The notes beneath the pieces are model-generated. The model ran no database searches. It saw nothing but the letters and a program-made list of their open reading frames with translations, and was not told the DNA's origin. The position numbers and the translations under genes were made by a program. Positions 6,445 through 54,472 of a stretch of 64,000 bases of DNA are shown in pieces. This stretch comes from Paramoeba atlantica (lineage: Eukaryota; Protista; Discosea). Numbering within the stretch: position 1 is the first letter of the stretch; the number at the start of each line of letters is the position of its first letter. The stretch covers positions 186,001-250,000 of the forward strand of contig CDRNVI010000049.1 in assembly GCA_977017575.1 (NCBI GenBank), read 5' to 3'.

Positions 6445-6792
6445 ACTATTCCCCATACTTTTTCCCACGCTCTTATACTTTTAATGAAAGTCATAACTGT
6501 TAGTTACTTTAAACTGTTCATTAATCGAGTTAATATCCTGATATATCCTGATATGAAGAGGAAGATATTACTCCAAGGTCTCGAAAGCGAGCAGCGCGTC
6601 GTATTAGCAACGAAAGATTGCTGTCGTATTAGCAACGCGATGCTGTTAATCAGCGGGCGGCTGATGGACCAAGCCAATTAAGCTTGACCACAGTGAGAAA
6701 GGTCACGGATATTTCAAGCCATGCGAAGAAAGTTCGTTCTCGGAACGTTGAGGACCCACTTAAATTTGGAGATCTATCCTGTTATTTTTATT

Positions 6793-12142: not shown

Positions 12143-14254
12143 ATGGCGCGCGACAGCCCCAATCGAATTGAGGACGCGGAAGATTTGGTTCGCCGTTTTC
12201 TTTCTTATATTGATCGTCAGAATCGCAACAGTGAGCGCTTGAGTGGCAACAGTGAGCGCTTTAATCAGGGCGATGGTGATGGGCCTTGGGAAGATCAACG
12301 AGTTGAAATTCCATCTACGCAAGTTGCTCGTCGCACTTGTAGTGGATGTGTTGGGTTTGCGTGCGTTCGTTCGTGAAAAAACTTGCGCCACATTCCTCAA
12401 GGCGAGTCCGCCATCGAATGGATGTTAAACCATCATCTGCTTCGACACCCTCGTTGCGAAAAACATGGCCCTGACTACATGAGGGAAGTACGCGGAAGAC
12501 CGCACGTAGAAATATGTACGTATCGTGCTGACGATGCTCGCAACCCATGTCGTGCGCGAGCGTTTAGATTCTCCCCTTTTTTGAACAGTCGCCCTGGGGT
12601 GGATATAGACAAAGTAGTCAGCCCGAAAGTACCAATCAACGATGAAAGTTTCACTGCAGAAGAGCTCGAGGACGGCATCAGTAGACTAGCGCGCAACAAG
12701 GCACCTGGAATAGACCAAATTCCGGCGGAGGCACTCAGAATGATCACAGAACATGCTGAGCTGAGAAAATCCTTATTACATATTATAAACGAGGTTCATC
12801 GAACAGGGGTTTCGCCTGCGTCCTGGAAAATTGTCCTTCAGGTGCCTATTCCAAAAAAAGGCGACCTGACACAAATAGCGAATTGGCGGCCAATCTGTCT
12901 CGTGAACAGTGCGGTTAAATTGATGAATGCAATGATCCTGAAAAGAATCAGACCATCCATCGAGCCGCTCCTTCGCGACAGTCAATTTGGTTTTCGGCCA
13001 GAAAGTTCCACGGCAGGGGCGCAAATCATTTTGAATGATGCAAGAGTTCGTGCGACCAGGGGAAAGAAAGGCATTGCAGCGGCATTCATGGACTTCGCAA
13101 AAGCATTTCCCTCGGTATCGTTTCATGCCATCCGTGCTGCATTGAATGCCTTTCATGTCGGACCCGCGCTTACTAGGATGGTAATGTCCTTGTACTCGAA
13201 TTTAAAAGGAATAGTCCGCACACCATACGGAAATACGGATTCTTTTCCCATTGAAACAGGAATTCTTCAAGGGGACGTGCTTGCTCCTTACCTCTTTGTG
13301 CTTGTAATTGATAGGATTCTCAACAAAGCACTCGATAACAAGCCGCTCGGGATTCTTCTAAGGAGCAGCAGGACGAAAAGCAGGGGAATTCAAGAATTTA
13401 GACTAAAGGACATCGACTACGCAGACGACATAGCACTTTTAGCTTCCACGAAACATGAAATATCGCAAATGATCGAAGCTACGGCAAATGAGGCAAAACC
13501 AGCTAATCTGAGGATTGCCGTGGGGAAAACCAAGACTGCGTGGATGGCCTTTGGGAAAGTTCCGGGGGGGACGCGAGAACTTCGAGCAGGATCGCTTGGC
13601 AAAATTCCTCTTGTGGATTCCTACCGGCATCTTGGTCATCTTCAAGATGCTACAGCATCATCCCCCATCAAGGGCAGGCTAAGGCTCACATGGGCAGCAT
13701 TTCGTAAACTCAGTGGCATTTTGGCTTCTCCTCTGAGTGCTGCCACGAAAATACGCCTGTTTGACTGCTTGATCTACCCTATTTTAACGTTTGGTGCATC
13801 CTGTCTTTCTCTTTCTAACAAAATGCTTCGAAAAACGGAGGTTGAGGTAAATATGATGAGGAGATTCGCTTGTAACTCAGCAAAGCTTGACGATTTCGGA
13901 CACTGCTACAAGGGGTTTGTCACTTTGAGGGGCCACCATACCAATCACGCGGAAGCTGCGCATCGAACCATTAAACAATGGACGAAACAGCAACGCTGCA
14001 ACTATGGGGCGAAATCGATGGACCTTCGGCGAAACGTGGCTCTCCAATGCGTCAAATATGGCTACGGCAAAACAGAGCGCCGAAAAGCGTGGCAGACTCG
14101 GTTCATTAACATTCTCGAATGCATCTGCACTCATTACGGGTACGAGGCAAATGACGAGCAGTTGGATGTAAGCGATAGCCGCTGCTCATTCTACTTGAGC
14201 GAAGACGCATCAATTTCCAGCGAAGACATGCTAGGGAGTGATGAATCGGAATAA
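12143..14254 (+). CDS. Chimeric ORF: Merlin N-terminal Zn ribbon + complete RTE-like reverse transcriptase + Merlin C-terminus (one TGA at 12374-12376)
   Basis: N part: EWMLNHHLLRHPRCEKH...C...C. RT: NKAPGIDQIP, NWRPICL, QFGFRP, DFAKAFPSV, GILQGDVLAP, YADD, YRHLG. C part: GFVTLRGHHTNHAEAAHRTIKQW. ORFs 12143-12376 and 12383-14254 share one frame. Confidence 0.8.
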
Positions 14255-30819: not shown

Positions 30820-33732
30820 CTACAAATAGTACGGCAATTGTCGCAGTTCCATTCCCACATTTGGCTTGGCAGCGGAGGAGGTTCCGTGGAAGAATGCCAA
30901 CTTGCTTGCGCATTGCAGGACAAAGGGTGCCTTGATGGATCCGGGCCAGTTCGTGTACATCCAGCACAGGTGGTAGGACATGTTCTCAATAGCTTGCAAG
31001 GACAAACCGCCATCACGGAGCACAAAGTACTTGACCGGTTTCGAGGTAGCCAGGGTGCAGTCGACAGCGATTTGGGAGAAGGAGTGGGAGCTGTGCTCGA
31101 CAACATGTCCACGAGGAATGTTGTGCCACTCCACCCGTCCGCCCTTTGATACTGGCGCTGCGTAGCGATCATGAATACGTTTCTGGACTACCATGAAGGT
31201 AAGTTCAACGTTTTTGCTTCCGAGGAATTTTTCACAGTCCGCCATCTCTTCAACGCGCACACGGTCCATCATGCTGTCTCCCACACCGTCGCGGTACACT
31301 ACAACGCGTCCGACATTGGAACCTTTCACGAGCACCTCGAACACTTCTTCGAGAAATTCCTTCAATGTAGTCATGCTCATGCGATCCATCACTGGGTTAC
31401 GTCCGTCAGTCTGCTCACTCGCGGCTCCAGCATTGCGGCGGCTTTCAGTCGATGATCCTCCCATCATCTTCTGTCGGGACACCTGCATGTCTGTGTTGCA
31501 CAAATGGCTCCACTTTCGAGTCTCCGCATTGTAGTACCAGGCTACGAAACCAGCGAGGTTGCGACGTTGATTTTCGAAGGATCCGGATTCACTTGCTTCG
31601 CTTTTGCGATCGCTATAGATATCGTAGCCCACGTAGATGGTGCCATTTGCTCCAAGCTCCGGAACGTTGCTCGGAATATCAACCAGCCACAATGGCGTAC
31701 CCATCTTAGCAGTCACATTCTTCGCAATGTTGTGAACATAGGGTCCTGCCGTTTTTGCCTTGCTCATCTTGTCAAAGTCTACGAATTGAGAGACGATGCC
31801 CATAGACCCCAGTTCGCTCTTCAACGTGCCGTAGGCATCCTGACCACGTGTGCTGTGGCCGTTGCTGAGGACGCATAGCACAAGGGCGGGTGTACCTTCC
31901 GCCATGGCCTGGCGTACGGCATCGGTTCGCACCGAGTCCAAGCATTTGTCGATAAAGTCGCGGTCGTCTTCACCACTATCGACGAAGGTAACAGGTCCTT
32001 TCGCCTTCCATACGCCACGAATGCGTTCGTTGACATCCATAATTTGACGCACTAAGTCACGAGCCTTAGCACCCCAACCAAAGACTTGGTATTCTTTGCG
32101 TTCCTCGTTGAACTGAATCCGCATGGTCTGGGGAGCGAAATCTTGATTAGGGCGGAGAGTCTCTGGAGAGCCAACGATCTGAACTTTGACGGTCTTGATT
32201 TCTTTCGGTTGTATGGTTTCCAATGCCGCATTCTTGATCTGAAGGCCGTATCCGCTCAGGAGCTGTTTCGGTTCCTGTTCATCGAATCTCTTCACCAACT
32301 TGATGCACTGATCTTGCATTTCCTCGGGCATCTTGGAGCATCGCGTCGGAAGGAAGCGTCGTGCTTCAGTGCTTAATTGGTCCACAAGGACGAATTCAGG
32401 AATGAGGCGGACGCGGCCGGAGCGCTCACCCCAGATAAGAGGCTGATCCGTCTTTGTAACCTCCAACCCATACGTCTCCTTGTAGTAATCCGCATAAGAG
32501 ATTGTTCGTCCGCTCTTAAGCTCGAAGACGGACTCCACCGTCGTCCCCTTGTCCACTTTGTAGACCATGTAGTTGCGCTTCCTCGTTCCGTAAGACGTCA
32601 TCACCTTGAGACCCAGCAGACTGCGCGGCCCGTTCTTGTTGAGGTAGTCCAGCGCAGTTACACGTGCTTCCACATGACTTCGAGGATGAACAATGAGAAC
32701 AACACCGTTGTCTGTCAACTGGAATGTTGCAAAGTAACCAGGTACCACAATCATATCGCGATACACACGTTGCCGAGTGAAATCGCAGTATATTTTTCCT
32801 GTTCGGCGAAGATCTAATGATTCCAGAATTCGGCATAACACATGATTGTACACTTGCATCGTTTGTTCCTCATTAGAGCGGGGGTTGAGTTGCACCTTAG
32901 TGATGTCTTCCTTGCGTAGTTCCATTGTGGTCTTGAAAGATCCAAGGGAGACTTCACGTGAAAGCGGTTCTTGCAAATGTTCGGAGATATCCTCAAGGCA
33001 ATAAAAGTTAGTTCCAGAGATGATCAAATCGAGCTTCTTGAGGTATTCCTTTTCTAAGACTTGGCGAAGATATCCGAATAGGAGCTTCTTACGTTGAATT
33101 TCGCTGATGTTTTCATTTTTCTCGATGCTGAGGGGATACATGTAGACCTCCGCCTTACTGATGGAGACACTGACAGCATTCCACATTACGTCGCGGCATG
33201 GTGCACGCTGACGGAGGGCGTCACGTTCGGATGCCATCAAACGACCACGTTCCGTCTTGTCTTTGTCAGCCCAGAAACGATCCCAACAGCCACTGCAACA
33301 GCGTTTATTGGGGACGTCCGCATGCTTTCCTACTCGGCATAACTTACCACAGCTGTCGCATTTGGCGTACTCGCTCCCAATGAAGGGCATCATGCTTCCG
33401 GTGCCCGGACCACCTCCCATGGGACCGCCCATCGGACGGGGACCACCGGGTGCACCACCCGGAGGGCCACCTGGTCGTCCTCCAGGAGCTGGGCCACGAT
33501 CGTCTCTTCGGTAGTTGTCGTTTCGGCGATCATCGCGGCGGTTGTCATCCCGGCGATAGTCTTGGCGCTGGTCACGCGAGCGATCGTCCCTGCGATAGTC
33601 GTCGCGACGGTCATCGCGTCGATAATCATCACGACGGTCATCGCGTCGATAATCATCACGACGATCATCGCGCCGATAATCATCGCGCCGGTAATCGTCA
33701 CGTCGGTAGTCGTCGCGTCGATTGTAACTCAT
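30820..33732 (-). CDS. Argonaute/PIWI-like protein, copy 1
   Basis: PAZ (ISYADYYKETYG...DQPLI...LIPEF), MID (YGTLK...GIVSQ...K), PIWI (VGYD, YRDG, VQKRIH, LCWMYTNWPGSIKAP, C-terminal YYL). Confidence 0.95.
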   Translation of the reverse strand: MSYNRRDDYRRDDYRRDDYRRDDRRDDYRRDDRRDDYRRDDRRDDYRRDDRSRDQRQDYRRDDNRRDDRRNDNYRRDDRGPAPGGRPGGPPGGAPGGPRPMGGPMGGGPGTGSMMPFIGSEYAKCDSCGKLCRVGKHADVPNKRCCSGCWDRFWADKDKTERGRLMASERDALRQRAPCRDVMWNAVSVSISKAEVYMYPLSIEKNENISEIQRKKLLFGYLRQVLEKEYLKKLDLIISGTNFYCLEDISEHLQEPLSREVSLGSFKTTMELRKEDITKVQLNPRSNEEQTMQVYNHVLCRILESLDLRRTGKIYCDFTRQRVYRDMIVVPGYFATFQLTDNGVVLIVHPRSHVEARVTALDYLNKNGPRSLLGLKVMTSYGTRKRNYMVYKVDKGTTVESVFELKSGRTISYADYYKETYGLEVTKTDQPLIWGERSGRVRLIPEFVLVDQLSTEARRFLPTRCSKMPEEMQDQCIKLVKRFDEQEPKQLLSGYGLQIKNAALETIQPKEIKTVKVQIVGSPETLRPNQDFAPQTMRIQFNEERKEYQVFGWGAKARDLVRQIMDVNERIRGVWKAKGPVTFVDSGEDDRDFIDKCLDSVRTDAVRQAMAEGTPALVLCVLSNGHSTRGQDAYGTLKSELGSMGIVSQFVDFDKMSKAKTAGPYVHNIAKNVTAKMGTPLWLVDIPSNVPELGANGTIYVGYDIYSDRKSEASESGSFENQRRNLAGFVAWYYNAETRKWSHLCNTDMQVSRQKMMGGSSTESRRNAGAASEQTDGRNPVMDRMSMTTLKEFLEEVFEVLVKGSNVGRVVVYRDGVGDSMMDRVRVEEMADCEKFLGSKNVELTFMVVQKRIHDRYAAPVSKGGRVEWHNIPRGHVVEHSSHSFSQIAVDCTLATSKPVKYFVLRDGGLSLQAIENMSYHLCWMYTNWPGSIKAPFVLQCASKLAFFHGTSSAAKPNVGMELRQLPYYL

Positions 33733-43751: not shown

Positions 43752-44329
43752 GTCCCCTCTACCCCTCTAACCTTTGTTTCGAGCATGGGGTACCTTGGAT
43801 GTCTAACGTGACATGCACGATGGACGCCACGACAATCCCATGTCGTTTAAGGAAACCGCCTGAAACTTTGCAAAAATTACTTTCTAGGCATTTCGTTAAG
43901 CGCGGAGGTAATTTTCAACGCAAGGCGCGCAGCAGTGGTGACTTATAAGTCGAAAACAACAACTGCTTTTGAGGAATCGACAAAAAAAACAAAAATTTCA
44001 GGATAGTATGCTTAAAAAGTTCATAAGACTCAAACTGCACTTATCTCTACTTGCGAGCGACGACGAAATCCGTTTCAGTAAAGCGAACGATAGAATCCTT
44101 GTTGGTAGGCGACTGGAAGAATCTACTTGTACATGCATGAATAGCTGTTTACACTGTACTGTTTCAATGACGTGATGCACTATGGATTTACTTTTCAAGG
44201 TTAAAATATGAAATGAAAAGTACAGAGTTTATTGCGATTATTTTTTGACAAAATTTTGTTTAATCGAATAGCATCGAACCGTGCACTAAATACTGATGAA
44301 ACTTATACAGGTTTGGTGACATGTGCTTC
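43752..44329 (+). repeat. ~590-bp direct repeat A1 (pairs with 50509-51104)
   Basis: Near-identical from gtcc(c)ctctacccctctaacc to gtgacatgtgcttc. Confidence 0.92.
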
Positions 44330-44404
44330 CTGTTGGAGGTTCGGGGTCTCCTCCCGCGCGACGGGAGCGCGGCGGGAGCGCGGCGGGAGCGCGGCGGGAG
44401 CGCG

Positions 44405-44911
44405 GTACGACACATGAAATATGCGCATACTTCGTCGCTCACTCTCCAAGAACGCGTGAAACTTGCATGGAAAGCTTTTCACAGACTTAAGCCTCTCTGG
44501 AATCACCAGATAAATGTTCTGCTTCGCTTGCGATTGTTCGAAGCCCTTGTCGGAAGTGTGTTGTCATACGGATCAGCGTCGCTTGTTCCGACACTAACCG
44601 AACTGAGAGAAACGGATGTCGAGGTAAATAAGATGAGACGTTTAGCAAAAGGCACACCACTATGGAACGGGCACGAAAATACACCGACAACTGCGCTTTA
44701 TAGAGGCGACTCCAAGTTTTCTACGCAGTTACGCGTCAGCAGGGCAAAGCTTGTAGGACATTTATTGTGGCACGACTCGCCATTTCAAGAACTAATTCTT
44801 TGGAATGTGGACGAAAATGCGAGAAAGAAGTCTCTTTCTGAGATCTGCGCTGATGATTTGGGCATCGACATTTTGGAGATGAGCGAAGCAGCCTCGAACA
44901 GGGAACTGTAG
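44405..44911 (+). mobile_element. RTE-like retroposon post-RT C-terminal fragment
   Basis: RVKLAWKAFHRL..LW...RLFEALVGSVLSYGS...RAKLVGHLL. Confidence 0.75.
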
Positions 44912-45268
44912 CGCTCTCTTGTGGCCAATCTGAAAACCAAACTTGATGGTGTACCAAGGTACCAAGGTTGGTGTACTAAGGTACTTACGTACCTTACACT
45001 AGTAAAGCACACAATGCTCATCGCATACTAAGCACAAGAATCAATGAACATGACAAATGGGCTAGACTCCAATTTCAGGAAAAAAGTGTCGCAGTATGGC
45101 TTGAAGGAGATTTGACACACGTGTCTTGCGATGGTTCCGTGCAAAAATCGGGAACTTTGTACGTCAGTGGGGCAGGCGTCGCCCTGTTTCAGGGTGGGAG
45201 CTGCGTACTCCAAGAAAGCGTAAAACTGGACTCTGTGAATAACACTTCCTGTTGGAGGTTCGGGGTCT

Positions 45269-45338
45269 CCTTTAACCCTGCTAAACCGGTCCAAAGCCCG
45301 GGGCTATGTAAAAAAATACATAGAAAGGTGATGGAAGG
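45269..45338 (+). ncRNA. Twister ribozyme (type P1 with P5 stem)
   Basis: P1 CCTT/AAGG; U|AA at 45273-45275; P2 CCCT/AGGT; T2 GC/GC; P4 CCGG/CCGG with loop TCCAAAGC; T1 CCA/TGG; conserved GA at 45330-45331; P5 CTATGTA/TACATAG. Confidence 0.85.
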
Positions 45339-45642
45339 ATTTGCAACCTTATGAAAAGTGTAAAATTGAAAATTGTTGTAGCTGTTTTGCTCTGTATCAC
45401 TTTATTTATACATGTATGATGATTCAAGGTCGTGCAGCGCGGACATTGTAGCCGTAAACGAAAATATACTTTATGTTGTACTTTAAATGTGCTTTATATT
45501 GTGTGTGGATGATATACAGTTACGTGTAGTATACTGTATATTATAGTGTATTTACATGCATATGAAGATACATACATACATGTATATACACGTATGTACA
45601 CATGTGAGTTAAAGAAAAAGGAGGAGGGGGGGACGCGTCCGA

Positions 45643-45779
45643 CCCAAGGAATTTGTCCCTAGCAGGGTTAAAGGAGACCCCGAACCTCCAACAGGAAGTA
45701 CCGCGTATGGAGCCGATTGTGCGCCCGCACTTCGAGCGAGATGCGCACACTTCCTGCTGAGGGCAGGGGTCGGACACCA
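45643..45779 (-). repeat. Inverted second copy of the 40-nt core ACTTCCTGTTGGAGGTTCGGGGTCTCCTTTAACCCTGCTA inside a multibranch fold
   Basis: Core is identical to 45244-45283; a truncated third copy is at 44326-44351. Closing helix GTCCGACCC/GGGTCGGAC. Confidence 0.8.
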
Positions 45780-45959
45780 CAAAGATGCAGCGCGGTTGCT
45801 ACGTTACTAGGTAAACATACAGTTTTTAGAAACATAGAGTTTTTGTTTTCTACAACTCAGTTCAAATAATAAATTGAATTATGATAAATTGAATTAATTG
45901 AATAATTTGCAGTTTAATGAATAAACTAGATTCCAGCAGGGTATGAAACTTGATGTAGA

Positions 45960-46345
45960 GTTAGTTCTTGTCTCATATAGCTTTGAATCCTGCAACGCAG
46001 GTGACCATAGATTTCATAGTTAGATCTTAAGACATCTTGTCTCACGTAGCACTTTTAAATCCTGCAAAACAGGTACTTTAGATTCAAAGTTAGATCTTTG
46101 GCACATCGTGTCTTGCATAGACTTTTAAAACCCTGCAAGGCAGGTAACGTACATTTAGATTCATAGTTTATCTTGAGACGTCTTGTCTCACACAGAAGAA
46201 GTCCTTACTTCCTCCAAGGCAAGCTCATTAGATTCATAATCTTTGAGACGTCTTGTCTCGCATAGCCTAAAAATCCTGCGACTCTCATAGAAAGCCTGCA
46301 ATGCAAGCATAGATTCAGAGTTAGATCTTTTGAGAGGTTCTCATA
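45960..46345. repeat. ~70-bp degenerate tandem repeat (about 5-6 units) with two small inverted motifs
   Basis: Units contain (GA)GACRTCTTGTCTC and CCTGCAANNCAGG. Confidence 0.75.
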
Positions 46346-46390
46346 GTTCAGTTTTCTTAAAATTTACATTTATTAGTCGCACTACTTGAT

Positions 46391-46436
<46 letters not shown>

Positions 46437-46501
46437 CAGTTAGTTAGTTAGTCAGTCAGTTAGTTAGTTAGTTAGTTAGTCAGTTAGTTAGTTAGTCAGT
46501 C

Positions 46502-46536
<35 letters not shown>

Positions 46537-46627
46537 CAGTCAGTCAGTTAGTTAGACAGTCAGTTAGTTAGTAAGTTAGTTAGTTACTTACTTACTTAGT
46601 CGCTTAGTTAGTTAGTTAGTTGGTTAG

Positions 46628-46683
<56 letters not shown>

Positions 46684-46704
46684 CAGTCAGTTAGTTAGTT
46701 AGTC

Positions 46705-46747
<43 letters not shown>

Positions 46748-46834
46748 CAGTCAGTTAGTTAGTTAGACAGTCAGGTAGTTAGTAAGCTAGTTAGTTACTT
46801 ACTTACTTAGTTAGTCGCTTAGTTAGTTAGTTAA

Positions 46835-46905
<71 letters not shown>

Positions 46906-47035
46906 ATGAGTTAGATAGTTAGTTAGTCAGTTAGTTAGTTAGTTGGTCAGTCGGTTAGTTAGTTAGTTAGTGAGTTAGTTAGTTAGTTAGTTAGTTAGTC
47001 AGTCAGTTAGTTAGTTAGTTAGTTAGTTTGTTAGA
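46391..47035. repeat. (TTAG)n array with TCAG variants
   Basis: About 640 bp of gttagttag. Confidence 0.97.
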
Positions 47036-47248
47036 TGCTAAATTAAGTTACTAAGTTAGTAAAGATCGTGGTTTGGTTAGTGAAAGAAGTTGGTTAGTGG
47101 GTTAGATTATAAACTTGCGAATATTGGTTCAATTTAACCGATTGTTCATTAATTTCCTAGTAATATTACTTTAAGCACTTGATGAATCTAGGTATTTACT
47201 GACACAGTTGTCTACTTATTCCCTAACTCCATTACCAAGTTATAGTCT

Positions 47249-48334
47249 ATGGTTGACGCCATTCCAGAAGTCGTTCCCGCGCAAACGACTCTTTCAGAAG
47301 CCCGATCTGCTTTTAATGAGCTGTGCTCCATGAAGCGCATGGGATTGACGCTCCGGGACAAACTCGTACAACTCCTTCCTAACGCGCTTGAATGCGTAAA
47401 GGCACATGTGCCTACGACGCCTTTGCTGGAAGAGGCTTCCTCAACGGCAGGAAGTGGAGACACCGAACGCGGAGCACAAGCAATCCTTCGGGCCGTGAGT
47501 GCACTAAAAATTGGCAATTTCTCTAGCCGCGAGGTCCCGCAGTCAGTTCTTGTCGCTCTACGCGATCTCTTATGTGCGCACGAGGGCAGCCTCACCTCCC
47601 GAGACACCCCACCTTCATCCCCCCACTCAGAAGAACAGCGTAAAAGGGGCCGCGTGCCTAAAGAGATGCAAGAGGCATTTTGCGCCGTGATAGGGACACG
47701 CGAGGATCCTCGTTGCTCTGAAGTACTGCACCAGTGTCTGACGCACACTGGTTTCAGCGCTGCAACCTGGCTTACTCCAGGGGTGAAGGAGGCGGTGCGC
47801 AACGCCGTCGGTACCCGCCCTGATGCGGTGTACTACGCGAAACTCCTCTGCGAATCCCCTCCGGACTCACGACTTACCGCCTTAGAGTCAGAGGGCGTGC
47901 GCCTGGGAGTTTGGGCACTCCTATGCAAGTTGGGCGTCGTGCTTTTATCTTTTCAGTTAAAGCACGAAAATGCCTATGTACCAGCCGAAACGCTGGTGAA
48001 ATTAATGTTGGACGACGTGTCTGATCGTTCCAATCAGCCAATCGTTTCTTTTTTGGCGGGGCACACGCGAGCTCTGAGCGTCATTACTGGCGCGCAAACA
48101 AAAGTTATGCACCCTCGCCCCTTCCCTGGCCTAGTAATCCCATTGAAAGGAGCGAATATGAAGAAGACTTGGCACTTCCCGAATGCCCCAGCAGGCACAT
48201 GTCGTCATTGTGGCAAGCGCGGCCACCGCATAAGTGACTGTCGTGTTCCCGAGACTAGTGTCCTTCGCTCCCTAAATCGTGACAAAGGGAAAACTCGACC
48301 CGGAACCAAGAGTCAAAACCTAGTCCAATTATAG
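47249..48334 (+). CDS. Gag-like protein with CCHC zinc knuckle (VIPER-like element)
   Basis: Open 361 aa; CRHCGKRGHRISDC; lies upstream of a tyrosine recombinase. Confidence 0.75.
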   Translation: MVDAIPEVVPAQTTLSEARSAFNELCSMKRMGLTLRDKLVQLLPNALECVKAHVPTTPLLEEASSTAGSGDTERGAQAILRAVSALKIGNFSSREVPQSVLVALRDLLCAHEGSLTSRDTPPSSPHSEEQRKRGRVPKEMQEAFCAVIGTREDPRCSEVLHQCLTHTGFSAATWLTPGVKEAVRNAVGTRPDAVYYAKLLCESPPDSRLTALESEGVRLGVWALLCKLGVVLLSFQLKHENAYVPAETLVKLMLDDVSDRSNQPIVSFLAGHTRALSVITGAQTKVMHPRPFPGLVIPLKGANMKKTWHFPNAPAGTCRHCGKRGHRISDCRVPETSVLRSLNRDKGKTRPGTKSQNLVQL

Positions 48335-48952
48335 GGCAACATGATTTTAGCAAGAAACGGATTTTACTATAGCGAAAATGTGCACGATTTCATACTCTTC
48401 TTTAATTCTGAGATACTCTAATTCTGAGACATAATCTTTTAGCTAAGCGAAAAATTCTGGTTTCGTCCTATTTTTTTCGTCCTATTATTATCCTATTAGC
48501 GGCGTTTTCTTTGCAATGTTAGTTTCATTGTTCGTGCAGCCAATTTCATATTAACTTTCTGTTCAAGTTGATGCTTACACATGAGTTTTCATTACATACC
48601 AGTAGTATTTATAATAACTAAAAGAAAAACACTTTCAATAGCGGGGTTTTGTTTCCTTTCTTATTCAAATTTCTTAAGCATTCCGGCGGAGGAAAAATTC
48701 TCTATAGTAGTACTTTTACATACGTATCAAATACAAAGTAGTTGTTCTACAGTTCACTTCTAGTCATGAAAGGTTACAAGTATAGTGCAAGTATAGCATC
48801 ACGAAATATAGCGTAGAAGGCATAGAAGATACCTCTTTACGGGGTGTTTGGCGTTACAGCCAGGTAGATCTGAGTGAGATTACGTAACCTTATGGGTTAT
48901 TAGTTTATCAAGAATTATTGATATTTATTATTAAATTGCACTACACGTACTG

Positions 48953-49800
48953 ATGGTACGACAAAGAACACAGCACGTACAAGACTCAGAAATTCGAGAA
49001 GGATACGAAAGATACCTTTTTCTCGACGTGCACCGCCACCTTGCTCAGCTTTCAGCTACGAGACAAACTGCTGCGAGACGAGAATGTTACTTCGCAAGGC
49101 TGGAAAGCCTCTTGCAGGTCCACGGCGTGTTTAATATACTTGAGGAACAATTTTAAGCCTTGTGCGCAAGTCTAGCGCGTTTCTATCGTGCCTCAACATT
49201 AGAATCATTTCGTGCCGCCCTCGTGTGGCGCCAGGTAGAAGATATGCCCATAGAGGCATGCTGGACGCAATCTATTCGGTTCCGTAGACGATTTAGAGGC
49301 GCAATGAAGCTTTGTTTGGATCCCGTGCCCCGGGGATCTGTAACGTTCAGTCAGTTGCGAACATTAACAAGTCGCTGCTCTGAGCGAGGGGAAATAGACT
49401 ATGCCAGAGGTTTTATCGTCGCCTTTTACGGTTTGCTGCGACATAGCGAAATCACTTCCTTAAGACGAAGCGATATAGAGGTTAGTCACACGGAGGCTTT
49501 GTTGCGCATCCGCGGGGGTAAAGGGCGGAGAAACAATGTCGTAGATATAGTTGAAGTCCCGGAAGCTCACGATCTATTGGTCTACTTAAAGACATCGAGC
49601 AGCCACTAGTTACTCTTTCCTGGGTGGCAGAAGAAAAGGCCAACATATTAATCAGTAATGAAGCGAGAAACCTACAATGGAATGTTCACCAGACTTGGTC
49701 TTTCCACTCACTGCGCCATGGAGGTGCCGGACACCTTACTAGACAAGGAGTAGATCCTTCAACTCGTCTCCGACGAGGACGCTGGATGTCTATTTCAGTT
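48953..49800 (+). pseudogene. Tyrosine recombinase of a YR retrotransposon, with stops and truncated before the catalytic Tyr
   Basis: YGLLRHSE (R), GGKG (K), FHSLRHGGA (HxxR), GRW. In-frame TAA and TAG stops. Confidence 0.85.
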
Positions 49801-50488
49801 TGCGGGCTACCTTCGACATGCACATACAATATTAGGTATCGCTCCTCGGGAGCTCGGGCGCATCTCAAAGCTACAAAGTGATCAGGGAAAAATTGAGAAT
49901 TGGGATGCAAGAATACTCCCCGAATCTGTATCTGCTCTTGTTATTCGCATGGTGCAACACGTTGCTCATGTCAACGAAAAAGCACGAGACTGACAAATGT
50001 TTTCCAAGCCCACATTAAATAAAAGAGTTTACTTTGCAGCAGTAGATGCGACACCCACGCGATGGGCTGTTTGGCCAATGAAAAAGGGCGAAGTTTCACG
50101 AGATGAAATTATATATCAAGCTTGTAAACTCGAAATTGTGTTAGCGGAAGCCACAGCCATAGCTAATGCTATTCAAAGCGCCCACAGCAAAGGTTTCCAA
50201 TTTATTGTAATTGCCAATGATAATACGGCCGCATGTCACTCGTTTGTTAAGGGATACTCCCCACTAGATGCGCTTGATCATATAATAAAAGGTTGTCAGA
50301 ATTTCAAAGGGAAGTTGATTCTATGTGATATTCCTAGCGAGGAAAACATCGCGGATGTTGGAACTCGACCAGAGAAGATATACTCTGAATCAGAATACAC
50401 CTTTAGGAGCTATCAGTCTTGGAATCGACTATGCATTGCGTGGGATAATTATAGGATTTTGGGCACGACATTCACCAGTCGAAAATAA
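49800..50488 (+). pseudogene. RT thumb/connection plus DIRS/VIPER-type RNase H; RT palm deleted
   Basis: YLRHAHTILGI...NWDA then AVDATPTRWAV...IVLAEA.AI...IANDNTAA...IPSEENIADVGTR. Confidence 0.8.
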
Positions 50489-51559: not shown

Positions 51560-54472
51560 TTACAAATAGTACGGCAATTGTCGCAGTTCCATTCCCACAT
51601 TTGGCTTGGCAGCGGAGGAGGTTCCGTGGAAGAATGCCAACTTGCTTGCGCATTGCAGGACAAAGGGTGCCTTGATGGATCCGGGCCAGTTCGTGTACAT
51701 CCAGCACAGGTGGTAGGACATGTTCTCAATAGCTTGCAAGGACAAACCGCCATCACGGAGCACAAAGTACTTGACCGGTTTCGAGGTAGCCAGGGTGCAG
51801 TCGACAGCGATTTGGGAGAAGGAGTGGGAGCTGTGCTCGACAACATGTCCACGAGGAATGTTGTGCCACTCCACCCGTCCGCCCTTTGATACTGGCGCTG
51901 CGTAGCGATCATGAATACGTTTCTGGACTACCATGAAGGTAAGTTCAACGTTTTTGCTTCCGAGGAATTTTTCACAGTCCGCCATCTCTTCAACGCGCAC
52001 ACGGTCCATCATGCTGTCTCCCACACCGTCGCGGTACACTACAACGCGTCCGACATTGGAACCTTTCACGAGCACCTCGAACACTTCTTCGAGAAATTCC
52101 TTCAATGTAGTCATGCTCATGCGATCCATCACTGGGTTACGTCCGTCAGTCTGCTCACTCGCGGCTCCAGCATTGCGGCGGCTTTCAGTCGATGATCCTC
52201 CCATCATCTTCTGTCGGGACACCTGCATGTCTGTGTTGCACAAATGGCTCCACTTTCGAGTCTCCGCATTGTAGTACCAGGCTACGAAACCAGCGAGGTT
52301 GCGACGTTGATTTTCGAAGGATCCGGATTCACTTGCTTCGCTTTTGCGATCGCTATAGATATCGTAGCCCACGTAGATGGTGCCATTTGCTCCAAGCTCC
52401 GGAACGTTGCTCGGAATATCAACCAGCCACAATGGCGTACCCATCTTAGCAGTCACATTCTTCGCAATGTTGTGAACATAGGGTCCTGCCGTTTTTGCCT
52501 TGCTCATCTTGTCAAAGTCTACGAATTGAGAGACGATGCCCATAGACCCCAGTTCGCTCTTCAACGTGCCGTAGGCATCCTGACCACGTGTGCTGTGGCC
52601 GTTGCTGAGGACGCATAGCACAAGGGCGGGTGTACCTTCCGCCATGGCCTGGCGTACGGCATCGGTTCGCACCGAGTCCAAGCATTTGTCGATAAAGTCG
52701 CGGTCGTCTTCACCACTATCGACGAAGGTAACAGGTCCTTTCGCCTTCCATACGCCACGAATGCGTTCGTTGACATCCATAATTTGACGCACTAAGTCAC
52801 GAGCCTTAGCACCCCAACCAAAGACTTGGTATTCTTTGCGTTCCTCGTTGAACTGAATCCGCATGGTCTGGGGAGCGAAATCTTGATTAGGGCGGAGAGT
52901 CTCTGGAGAGCCAACGATCTGAACTTTGACGGTCTTGATTTCTTTCGGTTGTATGGTTTCCAATGCCGCATTCTTGATCTGAAGGCCGTATCCGCTCAGG
53001 AGCTGTTTCGGTTCCTGTTCATCGAATCTCTTCACCAACTTGATGCACTGATCTTGCATTTCCTCGGGCATCTTGGAGCATCGCGTCGGAAGGAAGCGTC
53101 GTGCTTCAGTGCTTAATTGGTCCACAAGGACGAATTCAGGAATGAGGCGGACGCGGCCGGAGCGCTCACCCCAGATAAGAGGCTGATCCGTCTTTGTAAC
53201 CTCCAACCCATACGTCTCCTTGTAGTAATCCGCATAAGAGATTGTTCGTCCGCTCTTAAGCTCGAAGACGGACTCCACCGTCGTCCCCTTGTCCACTTTG
53301 TAGACCATGTAGTTGCGCTTCCTCGTTCCGTAAGACGTCATCACCTTGAGACCCAGCAGACTGCGCGGCCCGTTCTTGTTGAGGTAGTCCAGCGCAGTTA
53401 CACGTGCTTCCACATGACTTCGAGGATGAACAATGAGAACAACACCGTTGTCTGTCAACTGGAATGTTGCAAAGTAACCAGGTACCACAATCATATCGCG
53501 ATACACACGTTGCCGAGTGAAATCGCAGTATATTTTTCCTGTTCGGCGAAGATCTAATGATTCCAGAATTCGGCATAACACATGATTGTACACTTGCATC
53601 GTTTGTTCCTCATTAGAGCGGGGGTTGAGTTGCACCTTAGTGATGTCTTCCTTGCGTAGTTCCATTGTGGTCTTGAAAGATCCAAGGGAGACTTCACGTG
53701 AAAGCGGTTCTTGCAAATGTTCGGAGATATCCTCAAGGCAATAAAAGTTAGTTCCAGAGATGATCAAATCGAGCTTCTTGAGGTATTCCTTTTCTAAGAC
53801 TTGGCGAAGATATCCGAATAGGAGCTTCTTACGTTGAATTTCGCTGATGTTTTCATTTTTCTCGATGCTGAGGGGATACATGTAGACCTCCGCCTTACTG
53901 ATGGAGACACTGACAGCATTCCACATTACGTCGCGGCATGGTGCACGCTGACGGAGGGCGTCACGTTCGGATGCCATCAAACGACCACGTTCCGTCTTGT
54001 CTTTGTCAGCCCAGAAACGATCCCAACAGCCACTGCAACAGCGTTTATTGGGGACGTCCGCATGCTTTCCTACTCGGCATAACTTACCACAGCTGTCGCA
54101 TTTGGCGTACTCGCTCCCAATGAAGGGCATCATGCTTCCGGTGCCCGGACCACCTCCCATGGGACCGCCCATCGGACGGGGACCACCGGGTGCACCACCC
54201 GGAGGGCCACCTGGTCGTCCTCCAGGAGCTGGGCCACGATCGTCTCTTCGGTAGTTGTCGTTTCGGCGATCATCGCGGCGGTTGTCATCCCGGCGATAGT
54301 CTTGGCGCTGGTCACGCGAGCGATCGTCCCTGCGATAGTCGTCGCGACGGTCATCGCGTCGATAATCATCACGACGGTCATCGCGTCGATAATCATCACG
54401 ACGATCATCGCGCCGATAATCATCGCGCCGGTAATCGTCACGTCGGTAGTCGTCGCGTCGATTGTAACTCAT
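51560..54472 (-). CDS. Argonaute/PIWI-like protein, copy 2 (protein identical to copy 1)
   Basis: Identical 970-aa translation; stop is TAA versus TAG in copy 1. Confidence 0.95.
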   Translation of the reverse strand: MSYNRRDDYRRDDYRRDDYRRDDRRDDYRRDDRRDDYRRDDRRDDYRRDDRSRDQRQDYRRDDNRRDDRRNDNYRRDDRGPAPGGRPGGPPGGAPGGPRPMGGPMGGGPGTGSMMPFIGSEYAKCDSCGKLCRVGKHADVPNKRCCSGCWDRFWADKDKTERGRLMASERDALRQRAPCRDVMWNAVSVSISKAEVYMYPLSIEKNENISEIQRKKLLFGYLRQVLEKEYLKKLDLIISGTNFYCLEDISEHLQEPLSREVSLGSFKTTMELRKEDITKVQLNPRSNEEQTMQVYNHVLCRILESLDLRRTGKIYCDFTRQRVYRDMIVVPGYFATFQLTDNGVVLIVHPRSHVEARVTALDYLNKNGPRSLLGLKVMTSYGTRKRNYMVYKVDKGTTVESVFELKSGRTISYADYYKETYGLEVTKTDQPLIWGERSGRVRLIPEFVLVDQLSTEARRFLPTRCSKMPEEMQDQCIKLVKRFDEQEPKQLLSGYGLQIKNAALETIQPKEIKTVKVQIVGSPETLRPNQDFAPQTMRIQFNEERKEYQVFGWGAKARDLVRQIMDVNERIRGVWKAKGPVTFVDSGEDDRDFIDKCLDSVRTDAVRQAMAEGTPALVLCVLSNGHSTRGQDAYGTLKSELGSMGIVSQFVDFDKMSKAKTAGPYVHNIAKNVTAKMGTPLWLVDIPSNVPELGANGTIYVGYDIYSDRKSEASESGSFENQRRNLAGFVAWYYNAETRKWSHLCNTDMQVSRQKMMGGSSTESRRNAGAASEQTDGRNPVMDRMSMTTLKEFLEEVFEVLVKGSNVGRVVVYRDGVGDSMMDRVRVEEMADCEKFLGSKNVELTFMVVQKRIHDRYAAPVSKGGRVEWHNIPRGHVVEHSSHSFSQIAVDCTLATSKPVKYFVLRDGGLSLQAIENMSYHLCWMYTNWPGSIKAPFVLQCASKLAFFHGTSSAAKPNVGMELRQLPYYL

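Follow-up and report, generated by a model that had tools for sequence, protein, structure and literature searches.

The window, that is, the whole stretch of 64,000 nucleotides of DNA that was analysed, contains genes coding for MCM5, two Argonautes, SCO1 and a MORN protein, all of them long, uninterrupted and free of introns. The MCM5 protein is 63% identical to its counterpart in PhF_6, 61% to that in PhM_4 and 58% to that in Perkinsela, as against 42-45% for trypanosomatids. The first two labels stand for free-living prokinetoplastids, PhF-6 being Apiculatamorpha spiralis and PhM-4 Papus ankaliazontas (PMC7859406). Both the closeness of MCM5 to the prokinetoplastids and the long genes without introns bear out the kinetoplastid source that a first-pass annotation of this DNA had proposed, and the host is a relative of the Prokinetoplastina that is identical to neither A. 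spiralis nor P. ankaliazontas.

The two Argonaute genes (PAZ and Piwi domains, 970 aa; 30820-33732 and 51560-54472, both on the minus strand) code for proteins that are 100% identical, lie 20.7 kb apart and enclose a mosaic of retroelements. The duplication that they represent is short, since the ORFs of about 730 aa next to the two genes show no relationship to one another. Elsewhere in the window (12383-14254, plus strand), a 623-aa ORF with an RVT_1 match of 105 bits codes for a non-LTR reverse transcriptase (RT), related to a fragment that adjoins the ribozyme motif described below.

The twister motif and its relatives in the genome

A twister ribozyme motif occupies positions 45269-45338 of the retroelement mosaic and consists of the following elements:

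45269..45338 (+): type-P1 twister ribozyme motif that lacks P3 and has a P5 of 7 bp (full-length RF03160 match, covariation)
45269-72 CCTT / 45335-38 AAGG (+): P1 (sequence)
U45273-A-A: L1 (UAA)
45273..45274 (+): predicted scissile U|A bond (UAA L1 position in the Rfam alignment; rule from PMC8501958)
45276-79 CCCT / 45326-29 AGGT: P2, with a single C.U mismatch (C45276/U45329) in the pair adjoining L1
G45280-C45281 (L2) with G45296-C45297: T2 pseudoknot
45286-89 CCGG / 45298-301 CCGG: P4, enclosing the loop UCCAAAGC
C45291-C-A45293 with U45332-G-G45334: T1 pseudoknot
45304-10 / 45317-23: P5, 7 bp
GAUGG, including G45330-A45331: 3' strand of L1

Every twister element listed in the first-pass annotation was retrieved in the sequence at its proposed position, and the site of P3 is taken by a 4-nt linker. 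The alignment with the Rfam twister-P1 model (RF03160) spans exactly 45269-45338 and covers model positions 1-68 of 68, with a score of 29.1 bits; its E-value is 3.5e-4 when 601 bp are scanned and 0.0063 when the search covers the complete genome of 45.7 Mb. A scan of the window at the Rfam gathering threshold gave no match, the twister appearing only in E-value mode. Indeed, both the window copy and the best copy of the genome (39.1 bits) stay under the gathering score of 67.2 bits, which is an operational cut-off and not a structural feature; the alignment shows that the window score is low because P3 is deleted and the P5 hairpin is scored as an insertion. With a covariance model of our own (R1), the same interval scores 68.9 bits. 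The minimum-free-energy fold of the motif alone has an unremarkable z of -1.44; as the pseudoknotted fold is not recovered by this type of folding, the value counts neither for nor against a twister.

The genome-wide search with the Rfam twister-P1 model that the first-pass annotation had suggested was performed on an assembly of 45.7 Mb in 248 contigs and returned 56 matches at E<=10, nearly all of them full length. From these, 26 aligned copies were used to build the covariance model mentioned above, which yielded at least 145 full-length twister matches in the genome (150 of the 10,583 first-look candidates scored). Many matches form pairs of equal score on separate contigs, which is why the assembly may hold both haplotypes. 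At least three subfamilies were found, differing in the sequences of P1, P2, P4 and P5.

The 26-copy alignment provides several lines of evidence for the fold. First, standard pairs fill 94.1% of the pair cells, compared with 39-59% when partners are slid by one to three columns, these and the following counts being made on sequences that were chosen by a structure-aware model and are thereby biased toward pairing. Second, both sides have changed in 10 of the 17 pairs, namely in all four pairs of P1, as the first-pass annotation had supposed for this helix, all four of P2, and one of P4. Third, T1 is paired in 98.7% of cases; at the third pair, 20 copies have C-G and six have A-U, the window copy (CCA/UGG) being one of the latter, with zero mismatches, so that this difference, too, is compensatory within the genome, as had been claimed. 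Fourth, T2 is invariant in 26 of 26 copies, and the same holds for the AA, GC, GUC..AAGCC and GA.GG positions of L1, L2 and L4, which agree with the segment table of the Schistosoma mansoni twisters (PMC8501958). Lastly, the interval between P4 and P2 folds as a hairpin of 4-13 bp (P5) in all 26 copies, its sequence being unrelated between subfamilies, and P3 is replaced by a linker of 4-6 nt in all copies. The original description of twister reportedly treated both P3 and P5 as optional. The motif is thus a structurally complete and genuine twister fold, with a full-length model match and covariation in 26 copies, as had been proposed for it.

Twisters are cut between U and A, one nucleotide after P1 (PMC8501958). 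At the present locus, a cut at U45273|A45274 is predicted to separate the element from its first 29 nt, which would stay attached to the upstream RNA.

Architecture and coding content of the element

Homology between copies begins 13-37 nt upstream of the twister and extends downstream, the upstream flanks all being unrelated; this indicates that the twister lies near the 5' end of a repeat. The element in the window could be aligned from 45245 to about 50511 with L057, a near-complete copy on contig C53, and is laid out as follows:

45244..45283 (+): left terminal arm a, made up of a 25-nt leader and the first 15 nt of the twister; copies begin here, about 24 nt before P1; partner of 45660-45699
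45339..45659 (+): variable AT-rich spacer between the twister and a', unconserved between otherwise related copies
45660..45699 (+): arm a', exact reverse complement of the first 40 nt of the element; left half of an ICR-like splint
45696..45847 (+): segment B, forming the right half of the splint; complete copies have its complement, B', at their right terminus
46013..47158 (+): internal leader repeats, namely tandem repeats of 70-75 bp and, after these, a (TTAG)n microsatellite; also in the C53 copy
47249..48334 (+): gag-like ORF, 361 aa, with a CCHC zinc knuckle (Pfam zf-CCHC E 9.4e-4)
48935..49755 (+): tyrosine-recombinase gene with a frameshift near 49630-49645 (the intact L057 ORF, searched by tblastn, matches in two pieces that lie in different frames, at 93-95% identity)
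49760..50485 (+): RT-like ORF, C-terminal part (residues 209-450), the first 208 residues being deleted

Three genes lie downstream of the twister. The gag-like ORF of the window is 68% identical to the single ORF of L058, a short copy on C30. The recombinase ORF of L057 matches Pfam Phage_integrase with 42.4 bits (cut-off 27.1; E 8.4e-11), and weaker tyrosine-recombinase matches occur in L052, L054, L055 and L056. In subfamilies A, B and C alike, recombinase ORFs were found downstream of the twister and on its strand; those of subfamilies B and C are homologous, and so are their RT-like ORFs. A single RT-like ORF used as query retrieved no PDB match and two homologues in a word-indexed protein search. 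When five RT-like ORFs, taken from subfamilies A, B and C, were combined in a profile, the PDB matches were all reverse transcriptases (Ty3 4ol8, E 1.5e-7). In addition, P0122, a relative of the RT-like ORF with 38% identity, carries both RVT_1 (28.5 bits) and the RNase-H-like RVT_3 (22.2 bits, cut-off 21.6). For at least 31 of 77 RT matches, a twister match is present within 10 kb upstream on the same strand, chance alone being expected to give about 1.2. The ORF order gag-like, tyrosine recombinase, RT/RNase H was seen in L052 together with L004, in L057 and in the window. The twister thus belongs, as its head, to a DIRS/VIPER-like tyrosine-recombinase retrotransposon that lies downstream of the motif. 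The window copy itself is defective, with a frameshifted recombinase, an RT without N-terminus, no B' and a non-LTR insertion in its leader. At L057 3134-4009, the retroelement contains an insertion of 876 bp bounded by inverted repeats of 33 and 85 nt, which the window copy lacks and which resembles a MITE-like DNA transposon.

The termini of the element are mirrored inside it. In the window, a and a' form a perfect inverted repeat of 40 nt (45244-45283 versus 45660-45699), and a' covers the predicted cut U45273|A45274, extending 10 nt past it. Similarly, a' spans the predicted cut in all of the about 20 copies compared, reaching 8-18 nt beyond. The a/a' pairs of subfamilies A, B and C have unrelated sequences, each leader matching its own a'. 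Upstream of the predicted cut, a and a' show perfect identity in subfamily B and in L005, and after it their identity is degraded. As for the right half of the splint, a' adjoins a 157-nt segment B in L057, and a B' that is 100% complementary lies 6.2 kb further on, past the ORFs. This B' (L057 7275-7431) aligns in reverse with window positions 45847-45696 at 96.8%, and its counterpart is not present in the window copy according to the alignment with L057. The same layout of a', B and B' was found in L058 and in L054 and L055 of subfamily A, the sequences being unrelated to those of the window type. The splint layout with a' abutting B therefore occurs in four full elements (L057, L058, L054 and L055) from three diverged lineages, and the order of a full element is a, the rest of the twister, the spacer, a'B, gag-CCHC, tyrosine recombinase, RT/RNase H and B'. 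The left and right termini are not inverted copies of each other, and the splint sits in the 5' leader. The fused a'B equals the reverse complement of the joined ends B'.a, that is, of a circle junction in which the right end runs straight into the left end. The two ends of an element have 3-7 nt in common (CTT, CGGTAC, ATTTA or TACTTTA), each present as a single copy in a'B, and the junction trinucleotide of DIRS is described in the same way (PMC7192593).

Inverted repeats of the B/B' type were also retrieved outside the assembly. On the ENA contig ctg3751l (L059), repeats of 126 nt (1383-1508 and 6481-6606) surround an element coding for a 38% relative of the RT. No twister was found in L059 at E<=1; no more than 1.4 kb of contig precede B, and the source may be the same organism.

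About 20 same-strand twister matches are clustered on C54 (573-702 kb, plus strand) and C99 (43-78 kb, minus strand), some of them spaced regularly, about 6.53 kb apart. At these loci (L011, L017-L024 and L053), homology continues on both sides of the twister, inside longer repeats, and the twisters show an internal C.U mismatch in P2 (GUAG for GGAG). No a' was found within reach of them, and the downstream ORFs code for leucine-rich-repeat proteins, with neither recombinase nor RT. This indicates that not every twister in this genome heads an intact element. The clustered twisters may be decayed copies carried in a tandemly amplified gene array.

A proposed replication cycle and its alternatives

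The motif is probably a type-P1 twister, lacking P3 and bearing P5, that heads a retrotransposon of the DIRS order in a prokinetoplastid-like kinetoplastid, where the ribozyme would free the RNA of the element and the a'B splint would rebuild its ends. The fold, the covariation, the architecture and the coding content are observations, to which the proposed cycle adds putative co-transcription, cleavage and templated repair. In a first step, the element would be transcribed within a polycistron of the host. The twister would then fold and cut at U45273|A45274 before a' is made, which takes place about 380 nt later in the window copy. The freed RNA would start at A45274, the initial 29 nt of the element being lost. 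First-strand cDNA would then carry at its 3' end the complement of the 10 nt after the cut, so that this end could anneal to the internal copy on the same cDNA. Extension would run across the leader into the right-end sequence, whereby the termini would be both restored and bridged, as is done by the ICR in the Cappello model of DIRS-1. Finally, the recombinase would integrate the resulting circle at a site having a core of 3-7 nt in common with the junction. As to the origin of this arrangement, the balance tips slightly toward a twister that has replaced the DIRS-type internal promoter in one lineage of recombinase retrotransposons, the splint re-templating the 19-37 nt that would be lost in each cycle.

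The 40-bp duplex of a and a' could also act in the RNA, masking the ribozyme, either as an alternative to templated repair or as an added role. Taken as the sole function, this would make a/a' an RNA switch and no repair template: a', once transcribed, would block the twister by pairing with the leader and with the 5' strands of both P1 and P2, and the co-transcriptionally cleaved RNA would serve as messenger. Arm a does cover the 5' strands of both P1 and P2, so that a duplex of 40 bp would outcompete the ribozyme fold, and cleaved twisters allowed translation of a downstream reporter in S. mansoni constructs (PMC8501958). However, such a switch leaves unexplained why a' is constantly fused to B, so that a'B equals the circle junction, and why a and a' agree perfectly before the cut and less well beyond it; moreover, it gives uncleaved RNA no defined 5' end. 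A switch without repair is therefore considered rather unlikely, although the two roles could coexist.

That the motif is an inactive relic or a non-catalytic chance look-alike is very improbable. Such a reading is favoured by a score under the Rfam cut-off, by the dead state of the window element and by the P2 mismatch, which adjoins the active site and may slow or abolish cleavage in the window-type subfamily. This mismatch is common to a young subfamily (L025-L027, L042 and L048), an older relative (L028) having a perfect P2. However, the ribozyme core of the window is that of the C53 copy (L057), save for one extra A in the P5 loop, and the latter copy has an open recombinase ORF and a 157-nt B/B' pair that is 100% identical, pointing to recent activity of this very ribozyme sequence. 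As a copy with the same core has perfect terminal repeats, the P2 mismatch has not blocked recent spread. In addition, a genome-wide E of 0.0063, the presence of at least 145 relatives, compensatory changes affecting four helices, and catalytic-loop nucleotides that stay invariant in subfamilies differing elsewhere all argue against a relic.

The first-pass annotation had assigned the twister to the end of an RTE-like or SINE-like transcript, with an RTE fragment about 350 bp upstream. In favour of this, a non-LTR RT fragment does precede the twister, and in S. mansoni it is an RTE-clade element, Perere-3, that begins with twister variants (PMC8501958). The sequence upstream of the twister is composed of two parts:

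44326..44352 (+): second 27-nt copy of the leader, 100% identical to 45245-45271, a probable target-site duplication
44353..45244 (+): 5'-truncated non-LTR retrotransposon fragment (RT C-terminus and 3' tail), inserted in the leader of the twister element

The ORF at 44321-44911 is 29% identical to residues 391-540 of the RVT_1 ORF of the window (E 5e-15), and the last 49 nt of the fragment recur in five other loci with 98% identity. Its end at about 45244 is 24 nt before the twister and not at the distance that had been given. The fragment looks like a later insertion, because it is bracketed by the 27-nt direct duplication of the leader of the twister element. Five reasons in all make processing of this retroposon extremely unlikely, as it lies upstream, whereas a 5'-processing ribozyme belongs at the 5' end of its own element; the bracketing leader is that of the twister element; other copies of the latter have unrelated upstream flanks; other copies of the non-LTR tail are without twister; and recombinase and RT genes sit downstream of the twisters. 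The earlier assignment is thus abandoned in favour of the downstream recombinase retrotransposon, the non-LTR fragment being a separate insertion. At the junction of the duplicated leader and the fragment (44356-44410), four tandem GC-rich units of 11 nt (GCGCGGCGGGA) were found, which may represent untemplated or template-switch sequence from the insertion.

Finally, to read 45244-45699, a unit of 456 bp, as a MITE-like DNA transposon that has the 40-bp arms for terminal inverted repeats and carries a twister-like sequence by chance is hardly credible: the unit is bounded by perfect 40-nt inverted repeats, and DNA transposons and MITE-like insertions are present in the genome (e.g., L057 3134-4009), but segment B directly follows the unit in every case examined, its partner B' lies 2-6 kb further on, past the gag, recombinase and RT genes, the downstream sequence recurs together with the unit, and the layout is conserved across lineages with unrelated arm sequences.

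Significance and comparison with known systems

Twister is among the most widespread self-cleaving RNAs. In the literature searched, no substantive paper joining twister ribozymes and kinetoplastids was found, in keeping with the statement of the first-pass annotation that twisters are undescribed in this group, and no paper was found that ties self-cleaving ribozymes to DIRS or to tyrosine-recombinase retrotransposons. The only role for twister proposed in that literature is the 5' processing of Perere-3 in a flatworm (PMC8501958). In the present, distantly related eukaryote, this fold stands at the head of another class of retrotransposon and is accompanied by an internal complement lying exactly across the predicted cut. 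If the reading of a freeing ribozyme and a repairing splint is true, this would be the first ribozyme tied to the DIRS order, a second biological role for twister, and the first case of twisters in Euglenozoa. It would also provide a testable, sequence-defined model of DIRS replication, in which the 5' end of the RNA is predictable to the nucleotide, the part that is lost is known, and the repair template is marked by lineage-specific differences. Furthermore, it would offer a way for a mobile element to gain RNA ends of its own in hosts with long polycistronic transcription. At least 145 natural twister variants without P3 are available for structure-function study.

As a ribozyme, the motif corresponds to twister type P1 (RF03160, clan CL00120) in the order of its elements (P1-L1(UAA)-P2-L2(GC)-P4/L4-L2-P2-L1-P1), in the presence of both T1 and T2, and in the conserved loops. 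It differs from that family in that the copies of this genome lack P3, have a variable P5 and fall under the gathering score, the subfamily of the window having in addition CCA/UGG in T1 and the C.U mismatch in P2.

The closest precedent in the literature searched is Perere-3, an RTE-clade non-LTR element of S. mansoni, which carries twister variants at its 5' end (PMC8501958). The element described here resembles Perere-3 in having its twister at the 5' end of a promoterless retroelement, with release from a host co-transcript as the proposed role (PMC8501958). Copies of Perere-3 start at the cut, the 5' strand of P1 coming from the target-site duplication (PMC8501958). Such a start with a P1 strand supplied by the target site was not found here; instead, the leader is encoded by the element, the 19-37 nt upstream of the cut being conserved and mirrored by an internal complement. 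Moreover, Perere-3 relies on an APE endonuclease and target-primed reverse transcription, whereas the present element encodes a tyrosine recombinase.

In kinetoplastids, L1Tc carries an HDV-like ribozyme at its 5' end. R2 (PMC8501958) and other non-LTR elements have HDV-like ribozymes at their 5' ends, with which the present motif shares the predicted 5' self-processing of retroelement RNA from within a longer transcript. Unlike in the R2-type cases, both the ribozyme family and the class of element are different here, and those elements need no internal repair template.

In terms of ORF content, the element can be likened to VIPER and TATE of kinetoplastids (PMC6681497), which belong to the same host group and have gag-like, tyrosine-recombinase and RT/RNase H ORFs. 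VIPER and TATE possess split direct repeats (A1 ... B1 A2 B2), and their survey makes no mention of a ribozyme anywhere (PMC6681497). In contrast to these direct repeats, the junction copy of the present element is inverted.

In the mode of replication proposed, the element resembles DIRS-1 of Dictyostelium and DIRS1-like elements with regard to being a recombinase retrotransposon, to a transcript without the element ends (predicted here), to an internal complement of the circle junction and to a core common to both ends (PMC7192593). The ICR of DIRS-1 is exactly complementary to both extremities side by side and is essential for retrotransposition; similarly, a short junction core is present at both ends after integration, in the form of the DIRS junction trinucleotide (PMC7192593). 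The two systems differ in three respects. First, the ICR of DIRS-1 lies near the right LTR, between long inverted LTRs, whereas the present element has its splint in the 5' leader, at a distance of 0.2-1.3 kb from the start. Second, long inverted LTRs are absent here, except for B/B'. Third, the missing 5' end of DIRS-1 RNA results from an internal transcription start, whereas in the present element it is a ribozyme that would define the 5' end.
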